Origin: Guillardia theta CCMP2712
Lineage: Eukaryota > Protista > Cryptophyta
Reading direction: 5' to 3'
DNA: 64,000 nt
Assembly (NCBI RefSeq): GCF_000315625.1
Contig: NW_005434624.1
Coordinates: forward strand, 389,100 to 453,099
Positions 26,410 to 33,035 of the stretch are shown one piece after another. The notes under the pieces are model-generated. The model was given only the letters and a program-made list of their open reading frames with translations, did no database searches and had not been told where the DNA came from. Made by a program: the position numbers and the translations under genes. How positions within the stretch are numbered: the stretch's first letter is position 1; every line of letters starts with the position of its first letter.

Positions 26410-27939
26410 TCATCTCTTCTCCCCGGCCACTTGCTCCTTCACCTTGCTTCTGTCCTGAGTCTTGCTGAGCTCTCGCGACACGTCGGTCAGACGGAAACCT
26501 CCGCCTACTCGTTTTGCATCCCCTACAGCACGTGCGGGCTTGCTGGTTCCAGCAACCTTTTCCTTGACGCTTGGCGTTCTGACCTTCAACTCGAAAGACG
26601 TCGACGTCACCGCGCTCGCTCCCTTCCTCGAGCTGGGATCGAAGGCTCTCGCATGGAGGACGAGCGGAGAGGAGCTCGCCAGGGAGCTCACTGGAATGGG
26701 GCCCGAGACCACGTGCGAGTCCTGCATGTCGGACAAGGAGATGGTCTTGGCTACCTGACTGTAGAGGATGGTGGCTCCTGGAGTAGAGCAGGTGATGGTC
26801 ACCTGTCCCGAGGGCAGCAGAGCTCCCCCAGCTGGCTGAAAGGAAGGAGGAGAGACCCGCACCTGACGCGAGAAACGTCTGCGCCCCCCGTGACCTCTCC
26901 AGACCTTCTGGATCCTGGTGGCACACAACTTCATCCTTGCCGACGATGCAGGAGGCCGTTTCATCGTCGGCACGGCAGCCTCCTCCTCCTCTCTCTTCAC
27001 CCCCCACGCATGCATCTTCCCCAGCGCGTCTCCTGCAATGAGCATCCCGTGGTGATTTGCGATGAGGGAGAAAATCTGCTCCTTGTCGGCAGTCTCGAAC
27101 TTCATCTTGACCTCCCCCGACACCACGTTGGTAATGCGGATGCCTCCATCAGCATGCGACGAGGTGACCCACCTCCTGGTCCCGTCGACTCTGTGATAGA
27201 CGTTGAAGGAAGCAAGACCGGTCTCCAGCACCGCCCTACCCTTGCCGTTCCTCACATCCGTCACCCTCACTGACCCGTCGAAGGAAGTTGAGAACAGCTC
27301 GAGGTTCGCGAGGTGCAGTGACGTGACGTATCCGGAGTGTCCCGTGAAAGTGTCGCGCTGCTTGCTCGAGCGCAGGTCAAGCGCTGCTATGCTGCAGTCA
27401 TGCAGCCCGCAGTAGACATCAGTTTGCTTTCCTACCACACACAGCGCGGCATCAGGGAGTTTCACCACCGACGAGAAGCCATGGTCTTGCAGTCTCGTTC
27501 TTAGATCCCACACGCGCACACAGCTGTCCCAAGAGGCAGAGAGCACGACGCCGCTCTCATGCAGGAAAAGATGATTGACGCAGTGAGCATGCGCCTTGAT
27601 CTGCTTTATGAGAGAGCGTCGCTCTATGCTCCAAAGACATATGGTCTGATCAAAGGAACCGGACAAGAGCATGTCATCCACTACAAGGAGCGAGCTGATG
27701 TATCCTTGATGCACATGCTGCAGCGTCTCTATCTTCTTTTGCTTCTTCGCATCCCAAATCGAGATTTTCTCGTCGCCACTTCCACATATCATCATCCTCA
27801 CCGACACCTCCCCCGATCCCTCCATCACCGTCTCTAACGCATTGATCGACGAATCATGAGCCTTCACTTGCCAATAATCGTCCGGCCTTGGCGTCCACGC
27901 TAAGCCTTCTGGATTCATTGCTGCTTGCTCCGTGCTCAT
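26410..27939 (-). CDS. WD40-repeat protein with IQ motif and Fn3-like (chitobiase/beta-hexosaminidase C-terminal-like) domain
   Basis: Repeats such as HQGYISSLLVVDDMLLSGSFDQTICLWS, AHAHCVNHL..LSASWDSCVRVWD and GHSGYVTSL; IQ motif CATRIQKVWRGHGGRR; PPSFQPAGGA..VTITCSTPGATILYS. Confidence 0.85.
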   Translation of the reverse strand: MSTEQAAMNPEGLAWTPRPDDYWQVKAHDSSINALETVMEGSGEVSVRMMICGSGDEKISIWDAKKQKKIETLQHVHQGYISSLLVVDDMLLSGSFDQTICLWSIERRSLIKQIKAHAHCVNHLFLHESGVVLSASWDSCVRVWDLRTRLQDHGFSSVVKLPDAALCVVGKQTDVYCGLHDCSIAALDLRSSKQRDTFTGHSGYVTSLHLANLELFSTSFDGSVRVTDVRNGKGRAVLETGLASFNVYHRVDGTRRWVTSSHADGGIRITNVVSGEVKMKFETADKEQIFSLIANHHGMLIAGDALGKMHAWGVKREEEEAAVPTMKRPPASSARMKLCATRIQKVWRGHGGRRRFSRQVRVSPPSFQPAGGALLPSGQVTITCSTPGATILYSQVAKTISLSDMQDSHVVSGPIPVSSLASSSPLVLHARAFDPSSRKGASAVTSTSFELKVRTPSVKEKVAGTSKPARAVGDAKRVGGGFRLTDVSRELSKTQDRSKVKEQVAGEKR

Positions 27940-27954
27940 CCTACTTCTGTTCTG

Positions 27955-27973
27955 CCTCCTCCTGCTGCTCCTG

Positions 27974-28062
<89 letters not shown>

Positions 28063-28112
28063 GCTCCTGTTTCTGCTCCTGCTGCTCCTGTTTCTGCTCC
28101 TCCTGCTCCTGT
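27955..28112. repeat. (CTCCTG)n hexanucleotide repeat upstream of the WD40 start
   Basis: Read directly. Confidence 0.9.
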
Positions 28113-28197: not shown

Positions 28198-28335
28198 GTT
28201 TACTCAAAGTTAAGTTAAAAATCAGTACGAGGACAATCAGGAGAGTCGAGGAGGCTTGACCCTGACACTGTCGCACAGGCCCAACGGCGAGAAGAGAAAA
28301 GACAGCGAGAACCAAACCTAATCCTGCCGACTGCT
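28198..28335. repeat. Dispersed intergenic module, inverted homolog of 17577-17706
   Basis: The reverse complement shares agcagtYggcaggattaggtttggttctc, agcctcctcg, actctccYgattgtcctcgtactg and actttgagtaaac. Confidence 0.85.
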
Positions 28336-28471
28336 GTCCCCCAACCTATTTTAAATGTCTCAGCTCGTTCTACTCATGACATCTACTATCATGTATCGTA
28401 GGCTTCACTTCTAATGTATATATTGACTTTCATAACATCCTTCCTGACTTTGGATTGGTCAGGGGGACTTG

Positions 28472-31400
28472 TCACTCTCCTCGTGTATTGCGATATTCTA
28501 CGTATCGCCTGTGCCCATGGCTGTGTATGACCCAGGCCTTGTAGTCCTTGAGCGACAATTGAAGCTCGCACACGTGTGAGTTCACACCCAGTCGACGAGT
28601 CTCCTCGTTGTCAAGACGGACGTTGAGACACAGGTCACGGTACGCTCCTGATTGCTGCGACGTAAACTCGGGATCGAAACGATTCTTGACGCGCAGGATC
28701 ACGAGCTCCTCGTCCTCGCAGATCCCTCGGAAGCATCTCGTGATGTCCTCGATGCTCTCGAACACTATACATTGCCGCACCACGTCCAGCAGCCGCCAGA
28801 CTTCCCCCTTGTACGACCTGCTCAGCTTCTCGATTGCCCGATCGAATCCCTTGAGACTCGCCCAGCTGTGTCGATACTGCGCATTCCCTTCTTCGTATCG
28901 CACCCACTTGACCTCTCTTGGTCCCTCCTCCCCAGCCTCCACATCCTGCACGAGCCCACCCCACTTCTTGAGCAGCTCCTTCACCTTGCGTAGGTAGGCT
29001 AGCTCAAGCAGCATGGCCTGATTGTAGAGCTGATCCAGACATGCGATCTTCCCCGCGTTATGTCGTAAGAGTCGGTCGAACAATGAAGGGCTATGCTCTT
29101 GCTCTCCCGCCTTCACCTGACATATGGCCCCCTTCCGCCAGGCCTTGTGCCCAGCACCGACAGTCTCCTTCAACCTCGTCACTTGCGCCATCGACTCTTC
29201 GTTGGTCGTCAATGCCCGCCAAACCTCGTTGTAATGCTTCGAGTCGTCCTTGATCCCCTGCCATGCTCGAACGATTGCAATTCTGCGTGCAATGCGCGCA
29301 ATCAGCCAGCCCAGCAGCAGGATCGATCCGTTGACTGGAATCTGAAACTGTCTTTTCTCAAGTACAAGAAAGTAGTGGAAGTTGACAGCAAAGTAGTTCA
29401 TCAAGGCGTCGAACGGAAGAAAAGGGACAAACTTCTCTTCCCAGAACACCAGCAGCAATCCTGAGATCAAAGCCGCAAAGCCTTCAAAGAACAATCGGAC
29501 AAGGTCGGTCGCCCATCCGTCGACGGCCATGTGGATTATTCCACTAGTGATCTGAAAGAAACCAGGCCCGCAGAAGCTAAAGGAGAAGAGCACAATACCC
29601 GTGCGAGGCTTCCCAAGAACGCTCAACAAGGACCCGGTGAAGAGGCCGAAGATCACCGGGAAGATGTAGAAGATCGTGTCGAGAGCTTCATACAGAGGCG
29701 CGACAAGCGTCACCTCGTTCTCAGCTCCTCGCTCTAAGGTTGTGGGATAGGCCTCCTCCCAGAAGGGAATGCAGGCTGTGGTGTAAATATCCCACTTGCA
29801 TCGGGTGCCTGCTTTCAGCCTCCAGCTGGAGTCTTGCAGCTCCCACGGGTTCTTGGTTGAAGAAGTGGTGACCTCCAGCTGGAATCGAACGGGGTCAAGT
29901 CCCTCGGTGCCGAGGCGACTGTCAGTGATGAAGTAGAAGGCGTTGGCGGCTTCGAAACTCTTGAAGGAGAAGTAAAAGTTGTTCTCCTTCTCTACTCCCT
30001 CCACTGCAGAAGAGACCTTACAACCATTCAAGATCCAACCGAGCTTAAGTGAGTAGTTCCCACCGGCTGGTAGTCTGTCCTCCCGCTGTTGCAAAACTTT
30101 CATCCTTGCAGCTTGCACTTGGAACACTTGTTGGCCAGCGAAATCATACCATATCCCTCCGGGTCCGAACGTGTGCACCACATAGAAGATGCCAACAATC
30201 ACCATCGACACCTTGAAAGAGACCTTCTGTATCGCAAGCGTGCAAGGAATGGAAGTGAAGAGCACGCTGCTGCTTCCCGTCTTCCTGACTGCATGTCGCC
30301 GCTCCTTGAGCCTCGCCCCGAGGATGTTTCCAGCAATCAGGCATCTCTGTCTTAACAGGTCCTTATGCCTTTGTTCTTCAGACCAGCAGTGAGGGGCTGA
30401 TTGGTAGAGTGAGTTCAGAGACTCGGCCTCCTCGCCTGCACCGCCAAGATTCTCCACCGCAACCCTTGACAGTCTACGGATCTTATGATGCCTCACCCTC
30501 AGCAACCAAGTGAACGAGTCTAGCATCGCCAAGAACAAGGAGCATTGCGCAGGCAGGTCGATCTGGTGGATGCGCCGGTATGACTTCAAATCGTCCAACA
30601 TGTTCGAGGTTGCCGCAGCTTGCAGACGGGCCAGAACCAGTCGAAGTTCACAAACAAACGCGCATGTGCCGTAGAACCGCGATTGCTCTGTAAATAATCG
30701 AATTTTGAGACAAACATCCCTGACCTGTCCCAAATGTTTGTGCTCGTCCTTCACAGCGAGTCTGTTCGTGAGGCTCACAATCACCACCCCTCGGTCTTCA
30801 AACAGCACTCGCAAACACTCTGTGATGTCTTGTATCCGCTCGAAGACGATGCTCTGCCGCACCAGATCCGTATGTCTTGCAACGGCTCCATGGTACTTTC
30901 GTAAGATCTTTTCGTAGCTTGCTTCGAAGCTCTTCATGGGAGTCTCATGGAAACGAGCGATACACCCGTGCGAGGTCTGCAGTTTTTCAACGATGACCAC
31001 CAATTTGTCAACAAACACTTTCTGCATCACAACCCCCTGGGCGTACAGTTGGTCAAAACTAGTGATCTCGTTTGTTTCCGAAAGCTTTACACTTGAGCGG
31101 GAGGTAAAAGCTCCAAATGATTCGTGCGTAGAAGGTGAGCAAGATCTTTTCGATGAAGAGAATGCTTCCAAGGCTCGAATCCTTTCGACATCTAGGTTTG
31201 CATCTCCTTGGTTTGTCTGAATTGGTGCAAGACAAAATTGCCGCAAGTGCTTCCGAGCGCTTTTGCAACCAGTGTAAGCCACTTCATGCAGCTCTCTCAA
31301 GCTTGAGTCGCCTCCCTGGGATAGTATGTCTTCCCAAACCTTCTCCAGCTCGGCCTGGTGATTCATGGCAGACTTGCGGGAGGAAGCTCTGAGGTATTCA

Positions 31401-32675
31401 CGGATTGCCATCAAGACAAGAAAGAAAAGCAGCTGCACGATTCTCATGTATGCCCCGTTTGATCTCAGTGCAGCCTCCACCCCAAGGAGAATCGCTGATG
31501 ACGCTGCCCCCAGCTCCAACACCAGGCACTCGTGAACAACGAGAGGACAAGGAAAAAGCAGCAGGATCTGGAGGGAAGGGACTCAGAAGAGGGAGAGGAC
31601 GAGACGGGCAGTACCATGAGGCTCTCGATCAGCGCCGCATACTCCACCTCTAAGTTGCAGCTGCTCCACGTGACAATGAACTCGGACATGCCAACAGCTG
31701 CCGAGAGGAAATATCCCAAGCACAGCATCTACCATCTCCCCATCACTCGCATATGAGTATCGGGTTTACAAGCACACTTACCGGTACCGACGCGTGGAGC
31801 CTTTTTAGATGCGCGCATGCTACAGCAAGCAAGATTCCGAGCCCCTTGAACAATCGCTCCAAGACCCTCGCATATGCAGGCCACCGGCATTTGATCGCGT
31901 TCCAGCTGATCTTGATGAGCTGATTTCGTGGAAGCGAAGCCAACATCCTCGAGAAGTCTTGCTCGAGCACGTCTTGACCTACAGGGACGGGAACTACTCG
32001 ATCCAACGACTGCATGGACTGCATCACGTAGACTTTCCAGTGCTCGCCGTCGCTGGATGACTCAAGGGTGAATTCGACGGGGTTGAACTCATTGCTAGAG
32101 TTGGATGTGAGAAAGTACCAGCCATCGAAAGAGTGCGAGGCATCTAATCTCAAAGTCACGGAAGCTCCTTGCCTCTCTTCAACATACTCGTCTCCTAGCG
32201 GATACCTCGGAATCAAACAGTCCCCTCTCAGCACTCCGAAGGATTGTATCCCAGGAGATGTTATGGCAGGCCCTGACAGTCCATTCTGAAGCTTTCTAGC
32301 AGTGAATCGAAAGAAACGAGACGCTCCTTGGGGCTGACTAATGCTTGAAAGCGACCAAGTCGCTGAGTGAGACAGTGGCAAAAACAGGAAAAGGAAAGCA
32401 ATGACAGCCAAACCCGCTTGGAAGATCCTCACAGACAGAAACCAGGTGAAGGGATGTGAAGAACAGAGAATCTCAAAGCTCTTATTCGCAAAGATCTTGG
32501 TTCGAGCAGCTTCCAGAGAATTTTGTAGCCTGTCACCCTCTATCTTGGTGCTCTCCACAAGATAGTCGAGCCACACCTGAGGGAACTCTTCTGTGCAGTT
32601 TGGCTGAGAGGAGATTCTTCCAGGCCTCAAGCTTTTGCCTGCATCCTCTTCCACCATGACCGTCATCTCGGCCAT
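28472..32675 (-). CDS. Multi-pass membrane protein (about 1367 aa) with two RelA/SpoT-like nucleotidyltransferase/synthetase domains
   Basis: Exons 32675-31782, 31728-31615 and 31567-28472 join in frame through 53-nt and 47-nt GT-AG introns. Domain 2 reads LKGFDRAIEK, LLDVVRQCIVF, VKNRF, SGAYRDL, CELQL, HGHRRY. Domain 1 reads MKSFEASYEK, TDLVRQSIVF, LTNRL, GQVRDV, CELRL. Confidence 0.85.
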
Positions 32676-33035
32676 GCTCCCTGTTCACGCAACCGACATG
32701 TCCACATCTTGCAACTCGCAACCCCGCTCCCTGTTTCCGCGCAACCCCTGGCAGAGGGAAGACCACCCCTCATGTGAGGCTGAGCCATTGGGAACACATA
32801 CCCTAGCAGCCCGCCTGCAGGGGGTGAGGGTCAGCCGATCGCCGGAACGAGTACGTGCGCCGGTTAATTATTATGTTAAATCATTATTACTTCACTAGTT
32901 GAGTAATCAAGAAAAGACTTCACACTGCTGCATGTTGCGATCGATCACGCAGCTACTCATGGCCCATTGAGCGTAGCATCAAGAGGATTGCTCTCAAGTA
33001 AACATGATACCGCCCCTCGTGAAGCTCGTGATGGA

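Follow-up and report, generated by a model that had tools for sequence, protein, structure and literature searches.

A gene within a 64,000-nucleotide (nt) stretch of the genome of the cryptophyte Guillardia theta CCMP2712 (contig NW_005434624.1, positions 389,100 to 453,099; hereafter the window) is predicted to encode a twelve-helix membrane protein with two domains related to RelA/SpoT (RSH) alarmone synthetases. We propose, with a probability of about 0.5, that this protein (GUITHDRAFT_111219; 1,367 amino acids, aa) could be a ligand- or stress-gated membrane pyrophosphokinase, in which the C-terminal domain D2 would be the enzyme and its degenerate counterpart D1 a regulator; this reading draws on sequence comparison and structure prediction. 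In its architecture, the protein is a new form within a known enzyme family, and there is a real chance, judging from its sequence, that it represents a new kind of eukaryotic signaling system. A sequence-only reading of the window had supposed such a system to be undescribed, and we found neither a prior description nor any study of the family in the literature searched, which lacks most subscription papers.

Fold and catalytic residues of D2

Structural comparison (VIA-align) of D2, taken from an AlphaFold model of the second half of the protein, returned RSH synthetases as its top seven matches (Z 9.4-11.7, root-mean-square deviation 2.7-3.5), namely RelP (Z 11.7 and 11.2), RelQ (11.0), Rel (10.0), Tas1 (9.8), SaEAS (9.5), and CapRel (9.4). 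Foldseek also matched D2 to RSH synthetases with a probability of 1.0, and in a search with a profile of 69 family domains, the two top-scoring PDB sequences were RelP (E 9e-4, across the Syn1-Syn4 motifs) and Tas1 (E 1e-3). The modeled D2 thus carries the RSH synthetase fold, which bears out what had been read from motif order. Structural identity to characterized enzymes is 14-19%, and profiles and folds were needed to detect the relationship: Pfam searches of the exons and a single-sequence PDB search gave nothing significant, and NCBIfam, PADLOC, and PHROG scans gave weak matches only.

Residue roles were assigned by alignment to Staphylococcus aureus RelP (PMC5794853) and to SaEAS and Apk1 (PMC12691689). 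On this basis, K1242, K1250, and R1253 are the predicted phosphate-binding residues, R1267 would stack on adenine, R1246 completes the predicted ATP-binding Lys/Arg cluster, and D1264 (Syn2) and E1337 (Syn4) would be the Mg ligands; with the G-loop Y1312, Q1339, and the late H1355, all expected catalytic residues are kept in D2. The sequence-only reading had assigned a full motif set to each half. This holds for D2, which has every listed motif, but not for D1, which reads KSFEASYEK, DLVRQSIVF, TNR, GQVRD, and CELRL and has no H..Y. The DQLYxQ helix, previously taken for a linker, instead aligns with the first synthetase-domain helix of RelV-like proteins and, through them, of Tas1.

D1 as a conserved, degenerate copy

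Comparison of the two domains revealed that D1 has lost the Arg four residues after the first Syn1 Lys (now A552), the Lys of KNR (T603), the G-loop Tyr (V618), the Syn4 Gln (R645), and the H..Y pair. It keeps the Mg-binding D570 and E643, and the Mg-binding Asp and Glu are near invariant across the family. The protein can therefore not be regarded as two complete synthetases, as had been supposed, because D1 is degenerate at the acceptor site. The ratio of nonsynonymous to synonymous substitution rates (dN/dS, simple counting method) of D1 against the two closest paralogs is 0.19-0.21, the same as for D2; by this sequence measure, D1 is under purifying selection. Since the Mg/ATP core is conserved without the acceptor pocket, these data suggest that D1 is a regulatory pseudo-enzyme or acts on a different acceptor.

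The asymmetry extends across the family. Among G. theta D1 domains, the Syn4 Gln is replaced by Arg in 21/28 and the His is kept in 13/28, compared with 41/41 last domains. A cluster library yielded 5,911 matches (507 at E < 1e-30), and the best 150 of these homologs were examined. In 21 tandem homologs outside the G. theta set, D1 keeps the Asp in 20, the Glu in 20, and the G-loop Tyr in 5, whereas D2 keeps this Tyr in 17 (two are truncated), and the D1/D2 asymmetry thus recurs in tandem homologs of other cryptophytes. Single-domain homologs (n = 119) resemble D2 in having nearly the full residue set, with K, K, D, R, and E invariant.

Mammalian transmembrane adenylyl cyclases are built as 6TM-C1-6TM-C2 (TM, transmembrane helix) with a composite C1/C2 active site. 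The G. theta protein has the same layout, which likewise arose by internal duplication and has unequal halves; the mammalian enzymes differ in their class III cyclase fold, in the position of the active site at the C1/C2 interface, and in the absence of a large beta ectodomain from each half. No cyclase was found among the fold matches listed for half 2. The likeness is topological only, because the fold differs, D2 is complete alone, and single-unit members are common. A true cyclase-like mechanism, in which D1 and D2 would have to pair as a pseudo-heterodimer and share a composite active site, is accordingly very improbable. Conservation of the tandem layout across cryptophyte sequences, the asymmetric loss of residues, and the homogenization of D1/D2 cores in many paralogs (see below) speak for such an arrangement, but a single domain holds the whole RSH active site (PMC5794853), D1 has no residue to offer that D2 is missing, and the common single-unit members carry a complete residue set. 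An adenylyl-cyclase-like mechanism is for these reasons not supported.

Duplicated membrane architecture and predicted topology

The protein is a tandem duplicate of a unit comprising TM1, a beta-sandwich, TM2-TM6, and a synthetase domain, with 12 helices in all (Table 1). D1 and D2 are 32% identical (E 3e-24). A BLAST comparison of the two membrane parts gave no match, and their likeness was detected by HHalign: a profile of 40 second halves matched exon 1 (TM1, beta domain, TM2) at 98.5% and the start of exon 3 (TM6 and D1) at 99.7%, which indicates that the entire unit was duplicated. Half 1 shows six hydrophobic peaks. In the AlphaFold model of half 2 (mean predicted local distance difference test score, pLDDT, 86.6; predicted template modeling score 0.79), one helix is followed by an all-beta domain of 140 aa and five further long helices, and then by amphipathic helices and an alpha/beta domain. 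The duplicated arrangement of six helices plus one domain, recognized from the sequence at the outset, is therefore upheld.

Topology was examined in 36 paralog halves, which are not independent samples. N-glycosylation sequons are enriched in the beta domain (77 vs 38 expected) and not in the catalytic domain (16 vs 19.5 expected); the beta domain has three conserved Cys residues, and Lys/Arg is in excess after TM2 and TM6. The sequon and charge bias favors a cytosolic N-terminus and cytosolic catalytic domains, with the beta domains outside or lumenal, consistent with the side first assumed for the synthetase domains. The inverse arrangement, with synthetase domains lumenal or outside like those of periplasmic RelV and secreted SaEAS, seems highly unlikely. 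It would fit the export of the closest bacterial kin and the weak hydrophobicity of TM9 and TM11, yet it is at odds with the presence of sequons and three conserved Cys residues in the beta domain and with the positive charge after TM6, and no signal peptide is seen and the helix count per half is even.

The ectodomain is predicted with confidence as a beta-sandwich (pLDDT 89.9). Structural matches were PLAT domains (Z ~6) and CBM32-type modules (Z 4-5.4), whereas sequence profiles lean to CBM32/F5-8C (GH92 CBM32 modules, E 4e-4; Pfam CBM32/F5-8C, E 9e-4 at best); structure scores thus place PLAT above CBM32. A glycan-binding sensor is a lead rather than a result. In most paralog pairs the ectodomain diverges more than D2, and its dN/dS of 0.15-0.34 gives no indication of diversifying selection.

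Kinship to bacterial synthetases and likely product

Profile comparison (HHalign) placed the family far from Escherichia coli RelA (3.4%) and SpoT (0.1%) and close to a Photobacterium protein of 262 aa whose N-terminus resembles a signal peptide (98.4%, E 1e-14) and to a Bordetella phage synthetase (97.5%), which itself exceeds the Pfam RelA_SpoT cut-off and has Tas1 as its best PDB match. Judged by eye, the Photobacterium protein is closely similar to Vibrio RelV/VpEAS sequences in the supplement of PMC12691689, and we infer that it is RelV. Those Vibrio sequences have KNRF, GYRD, and E.Q in common with the D2 family, and the V. parahaemolyticus entries are misannotated in the same way as the closest bacterial ESM Atlas cluster. 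Searches of viral contigs and bacterial genomes for such loci yielded no close relative. On these comparisons, the nearest bacterial kin found are RelV and other exported synthetases together with Tas1-like toxins, not RelA/SpoT. In Bordetella phage PHB04 (MF663786.1; L064:1577-3842), an unannotated Tas1-like synthetase gene follows the portal gene and precedes a 69-aa open reading frame and an HD_4 hydrolase gene, a locus that resembles the Apk2, immunity, Aph1 arrangement.

RelV/VpEAS and the G. theta domain share a D.LY..A helix, K-S-x-x-R-A-x-x-K, D-x-x-R, K-N-R-F, G-Y-R-D, E-x-Q, and a late His. RelV differs in being one soluble domain that carries a Sec signal peptide, periplasmic and (p)ppGpp-specific (PMC12691689), whereas in the eukaryotic protein the domain lies behind six helices and an ectodomain, is duplicated, and is predicted to be cytosolic. 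Tas1/Apk1 and the phage Apk2 type share the Syn1-Syn2 signature (no Arg before the Lys, Arg at K+4, D-x-x-R spacing), which is common to RelV, EAS, and Apk types; Tas1 is without the KNRF and GYRD that the family has in common with RelV, and it is delivered as a toxin, is accompanied by an immunity protein, and has no membrane receptor part. Instead of the export signal or secretion-system domain of the EAS and Apk types, the G. theta protein has a hydrophilic N-terminus and a polytopic membrane anchor. RelP and RelQ, despite giving the best structural scores, are soluble homotetramers whose R-x-K and D-x-x-G-x-R motifs are absent from the G. theta domain. Plastid RSH1-4 of plants and algae also represent eukaryotic RSH synthetase domains but are long HD+SYNTH proteins with transit peptides. 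No HD_4 match was found at the locus and neither a signal peptide nor a plastid-targeting peptide is seen at the N-terminus, and identity with a plastid RSH was ruled out on the grounds of the missing HD domain and targeting peptide.

The characterized relatives differ in product: VpEAS and RelV make (p)ppGpp (guanosine tetra- and pentaphosphate), Apk1/2 make the adenosine equivalent (p)ppApp, and SaEAS makes both alarmones (PMC12691689). Because the KNRF/GYRD acceptor-site motifs of D2 match RelV/VpEAS, we put (p)ppGpp first, at a little under even odds in our judgement. A different product or none at all would have somewhat under one chance in three, and (p)ppApp, or both alarmones, perhaps one in four. 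The case for ppApp from the Tas1 match was lowered since the RelV-like proteins are closer at the acceptor site. Pyrophosphorylation of RNA, offered previously as an alternative activity, becomes less likely given that the closest kin found are nucleotide enzymes of the RelV/EAS/Apk type.

The fold may also have been kept for an acceptor other than a free purine nucleotide, such as a tRNA CCA end, a cofactor, or a protein, or for nucleotide sensing that gates the membrane part. The low structural identity to characterized enzymes, the presence of CapRel among the structural matches, and the remodeled yet conserved pocket of D1 could reflect such a role. We consider it rather improbable, since the G-loop Y-R-D, E-x-Q, and H..Y of D2 are exactly as in the RelV-like protein and no clear channel or transporter appeared among the structural matches for the helix bundle.

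An expanded family with probable gene conversion

A domain profile search of the G. theta genome gave 114 matches, including at least 29 two-domain genes, and one- and two-unit architectures also occur in Hanusia, Rhodomonas, and Hemiselmis sequences; the paralogs anticipated in cryptophytes thus form a large family. At least two hydrophobic peaks precede the domain in 97 of the 107 proteins with enough upstream sequence, and in a dinoflagellate transcript the synthetase domain lies behind a hydrophobic helix.

In 16 of the 28 tandem G. theta paralogs (Table 1), D1 and D2 of the same gene have cores that are 96-100% identical, with nearly identical DNA over 230-490 nt and longest exact runs of 131-391 nt. 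The homogenized tract stops at the Syn4 Glu and leaves the D1-specific Arg intact. Intragenic gene conversion with a sharp boundary is the probable cause, and the clade of GUITHDRAFT_111219, from its sequences, has escaped it. The D1/D2 tree is quick, unrooted, and confounded by conversion, and no order of duplications was drawn from it.

Several further synthetase-like sequences were noted. A second, more divergent set of such genes (G000 C4:1071681, C71:208817, C100:16384, C524:2808, and ~15 more) came to light through weak matches (E 1e-10 to 1e-5) confined to the Syn1-Syn2 part, most of them in long open frames. Two ESM Atlas clusters with TPR or ankyrin repeats (rows 3 and 6) match the model, one of them across the catalytic region, which suggests that the synthetase domain is also fused to repeat sensors. 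On metagenome contig L061 (340-2823), the gene directly upstream of a tandem family member has a DUF8234 match, and its terminal helix and beta segment resemble the family TM1 and ectodomain, possibly reflecting a fusion or split gene.

Proposed mechanism and its implications

In the mechanism we propose, the protein would reside in the plasma membrane or in an endomembrane, where the two beta-sandwiches would face outward and both D1 and D2 would be cytosolic. When a ligand or stress acts on the beta domains or helix bundles, the amphipathic helices after TM6 and TM12 would shift and release D2 for pyrophosphate transfer, with Mg-ATP as the donor and the 3'-OH of a purine nucleotide as the acceptor. 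The likeliest product would be (p)ppGpp, with (p)ppApp or both as possibilities. D1, having kept the Mg/ATP core and lost the acceptor pocket, would most likely act as a nucleotide-binding regulatory pseudo-enzyme that restrains or tunes D2. The paralogs, with divergent ectodomains and a conserved output domain, would constitute a receptor repertoire.

Four observations weigh against this proposal. Neither domain of GUITHDRAFT_111219 matched Pfam RelA_SpoT (PF04607), which matched 2/40 paralog halves, weakly (best E 0.002). The structure search gave no confident fold match for the ectodomain (best Z 6.1). The Apk/EAS group holds makers of both ppGpp and ppApp, so kinship leaves the product unfixed. 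Finally, a genome search with HD_4 revealed no stand-alone alarmone hydrolase to serve as the off-switch that a messenger requires, although introns could hide one; its two matches each lie beside a classical synthetase match and represent two HD+SYNTH loci apart from the membrane family.

The same enzyme could instead be an immune or suicide effector that, on a cue from a virus, parasite, or predator, would cause toxic ATP/GTP depletion as Tas1 and EAS enzymes do, rather than making a reversible messenger. In favor of this reading, no dedicated hydrolase was found, the nearest relatives are either toxins or exported enzymes with cytoplasmic toxicity, and the expansion is lineage-specific. We nevertheless regard an effector as unlikely: the ectodomain shows no diversifying selection, the gene is present in RNA-type contigs of several studies, and no linked antidote gene is evident in its neighborhood.

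A gated pyrophosphokinase would extend what is known of eukaryotic alarmones. In eukaryotes, (p)ppGpp synthesis has been characterized only in plastids, and reviews point out that a cytosolic synthetase is not known, not even in cases where ppGpp or the hydrolase Mesh1 occurs (PMC8118318, PMC10107265). In the passages of RSH surveys consulted, the eukaryotic forms are plastid RSH1-4, Mesh1, and scattered soluble divRel proteins, with no membrane forms; Guillardia is absent from the supplement of the EAS survey, which covered bacteria. The divRel proteins of fungi, Dictyostelium, and diatoms also contain eukaryotic RSH synthetase domains but are scattered and soluble (PMC3153485). Synthetases outside the plastid thus have precedents in eukaryotes, while the membrane-receptor architecture is new relative to the same sources. 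We tentatively suggest, at somewhat less than even odds, that cryptophytes, and probably other protists, run cytosolic receptor-to-alarmone signaling, in which dozens of receptors built on a RelV/Tas1-type enzyme would make (p)ppGpp or (p)ppApp as a second messenger in response to outside ligands, and tandem forms would pair an active synthetase with a nucleotide-sensing pseudo-synthetase. If true, this would be the first candidate for ligand-gated alarmone production in the eukaryotic cytosol and would show that an enzyme which bacteria export or use as a toxin had been taken over as the output of a receptor. D2, at 190 aa, is compact and offers clear inactivating mutations, and D1 provides a natural control.

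Gene structure and neighborhood

The gene lies on the minus strand and has three exons with translations of 298, 38, and 1,031 aa, all contained verbatim and in the same order in the public model. Both splice joints are present in RNA-type contigs of two studies; the RNA nature of these runs (X1 and X4) is a guess rather than a stated label, made likely by the spliced joints that their contigs carry. An in-frame stop at 32687 lies upstream of the ATG, and an RNA-type contig extends to 32722. When 6% of a single raw RNA run was sampled, almost no reads for the gene were present. D1 and D2 lie in the same open frame, and the gene is covered and spanned by RNA contigs that overlap, which confirms the single gene first read from the window and rules out two separate genes. 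A pseudogene was likewise ruled out by the intact frame, splicing, and dN/dS of ~0.2.

Table 1. Features of the GUITHDRAFT_111219 gene (window coordinates) and paralogs with homogenized cores. HMM, hidden Markov model.
Feature	Position	Strand	Details
Exon 1 (aa 1-298)	31782..32675	-	hydrophilic N-terminus, TM1, beta-sandwich 1, TM2
Intron 1	31729..31781	-	53 nt, GT-AG, phase 0; joint 31728/31782 in contigs of runs X1, X4
Exon 2 (aa 299-336)	31615..31728	-	TM3 and first part of TM4
Intron 2	31568..31614	-	47 nt, GT-AG, phase 0; joint 31567/31615 in contigs of runs X1, X4
Exon 3 (aa 337-1367 and stop)	28472..31567	-	remaining TM4, TM5-6, D1, entire second half; single open frame
TM1 (~aa 84-102), probable signal anchor	32370..32426	-	hydropathy 2.24
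Beta-sandwich 1, predicted outside/lumenal	31890..32330	-	end approximate; family beta HMM E 1e-13; weak F5/8 type C match E 0.004
TM2-TM6, half 1 (~aa 271-391)	31403..31865	-	spans both introns; hydropathy peaks aa 271, 299, 329, 350, 373; TM2-6 HMM E 3e-4
D1, degenerate synthetase-fold domain	30563..31060	-	keeps K548, K556, D570, R573, E643
TM7 (aa 785-805)	30161..30223	-	
Beta-sandwich 2 (aa 815-959)	29699..30133	-	three family-conserved Cys, sequon enrichment
TM8-TM12 (aa 961-1094)	29294..29695	-	AlphaFold helices
D2, intact synthetase domain (predicted)	28475..29044	-	K1242, R1246, K1250, R1253, D1264, R1267, K1297, Y1312, R1313, D1314, E1337, Q1339, H1355, Y1358
Genes with homogenized D1/D2 cores			L024, L025, L027-L030, L032, L034-L041, L043

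A 149-base-pair (bp) interspersed repeat at 28199-28347, 125 bp past the stop codon, is 95-99% identical to at least 39 other copies, has ~1,300 candidates across the genome, and shows high depth in RNA-type runs. It resembles a short interspersed nuclear element or a miniature inverted-repeat transposable element and is unclassified, with no inverted repeat and no Rfam match. The downstream neighbor (26410-27939, minus strand) encodes a WD40 beta-propeller, for which no connection to the synthetase gene was seen, and is preceded by a CCTGCT microsatellite at 27955-28111.

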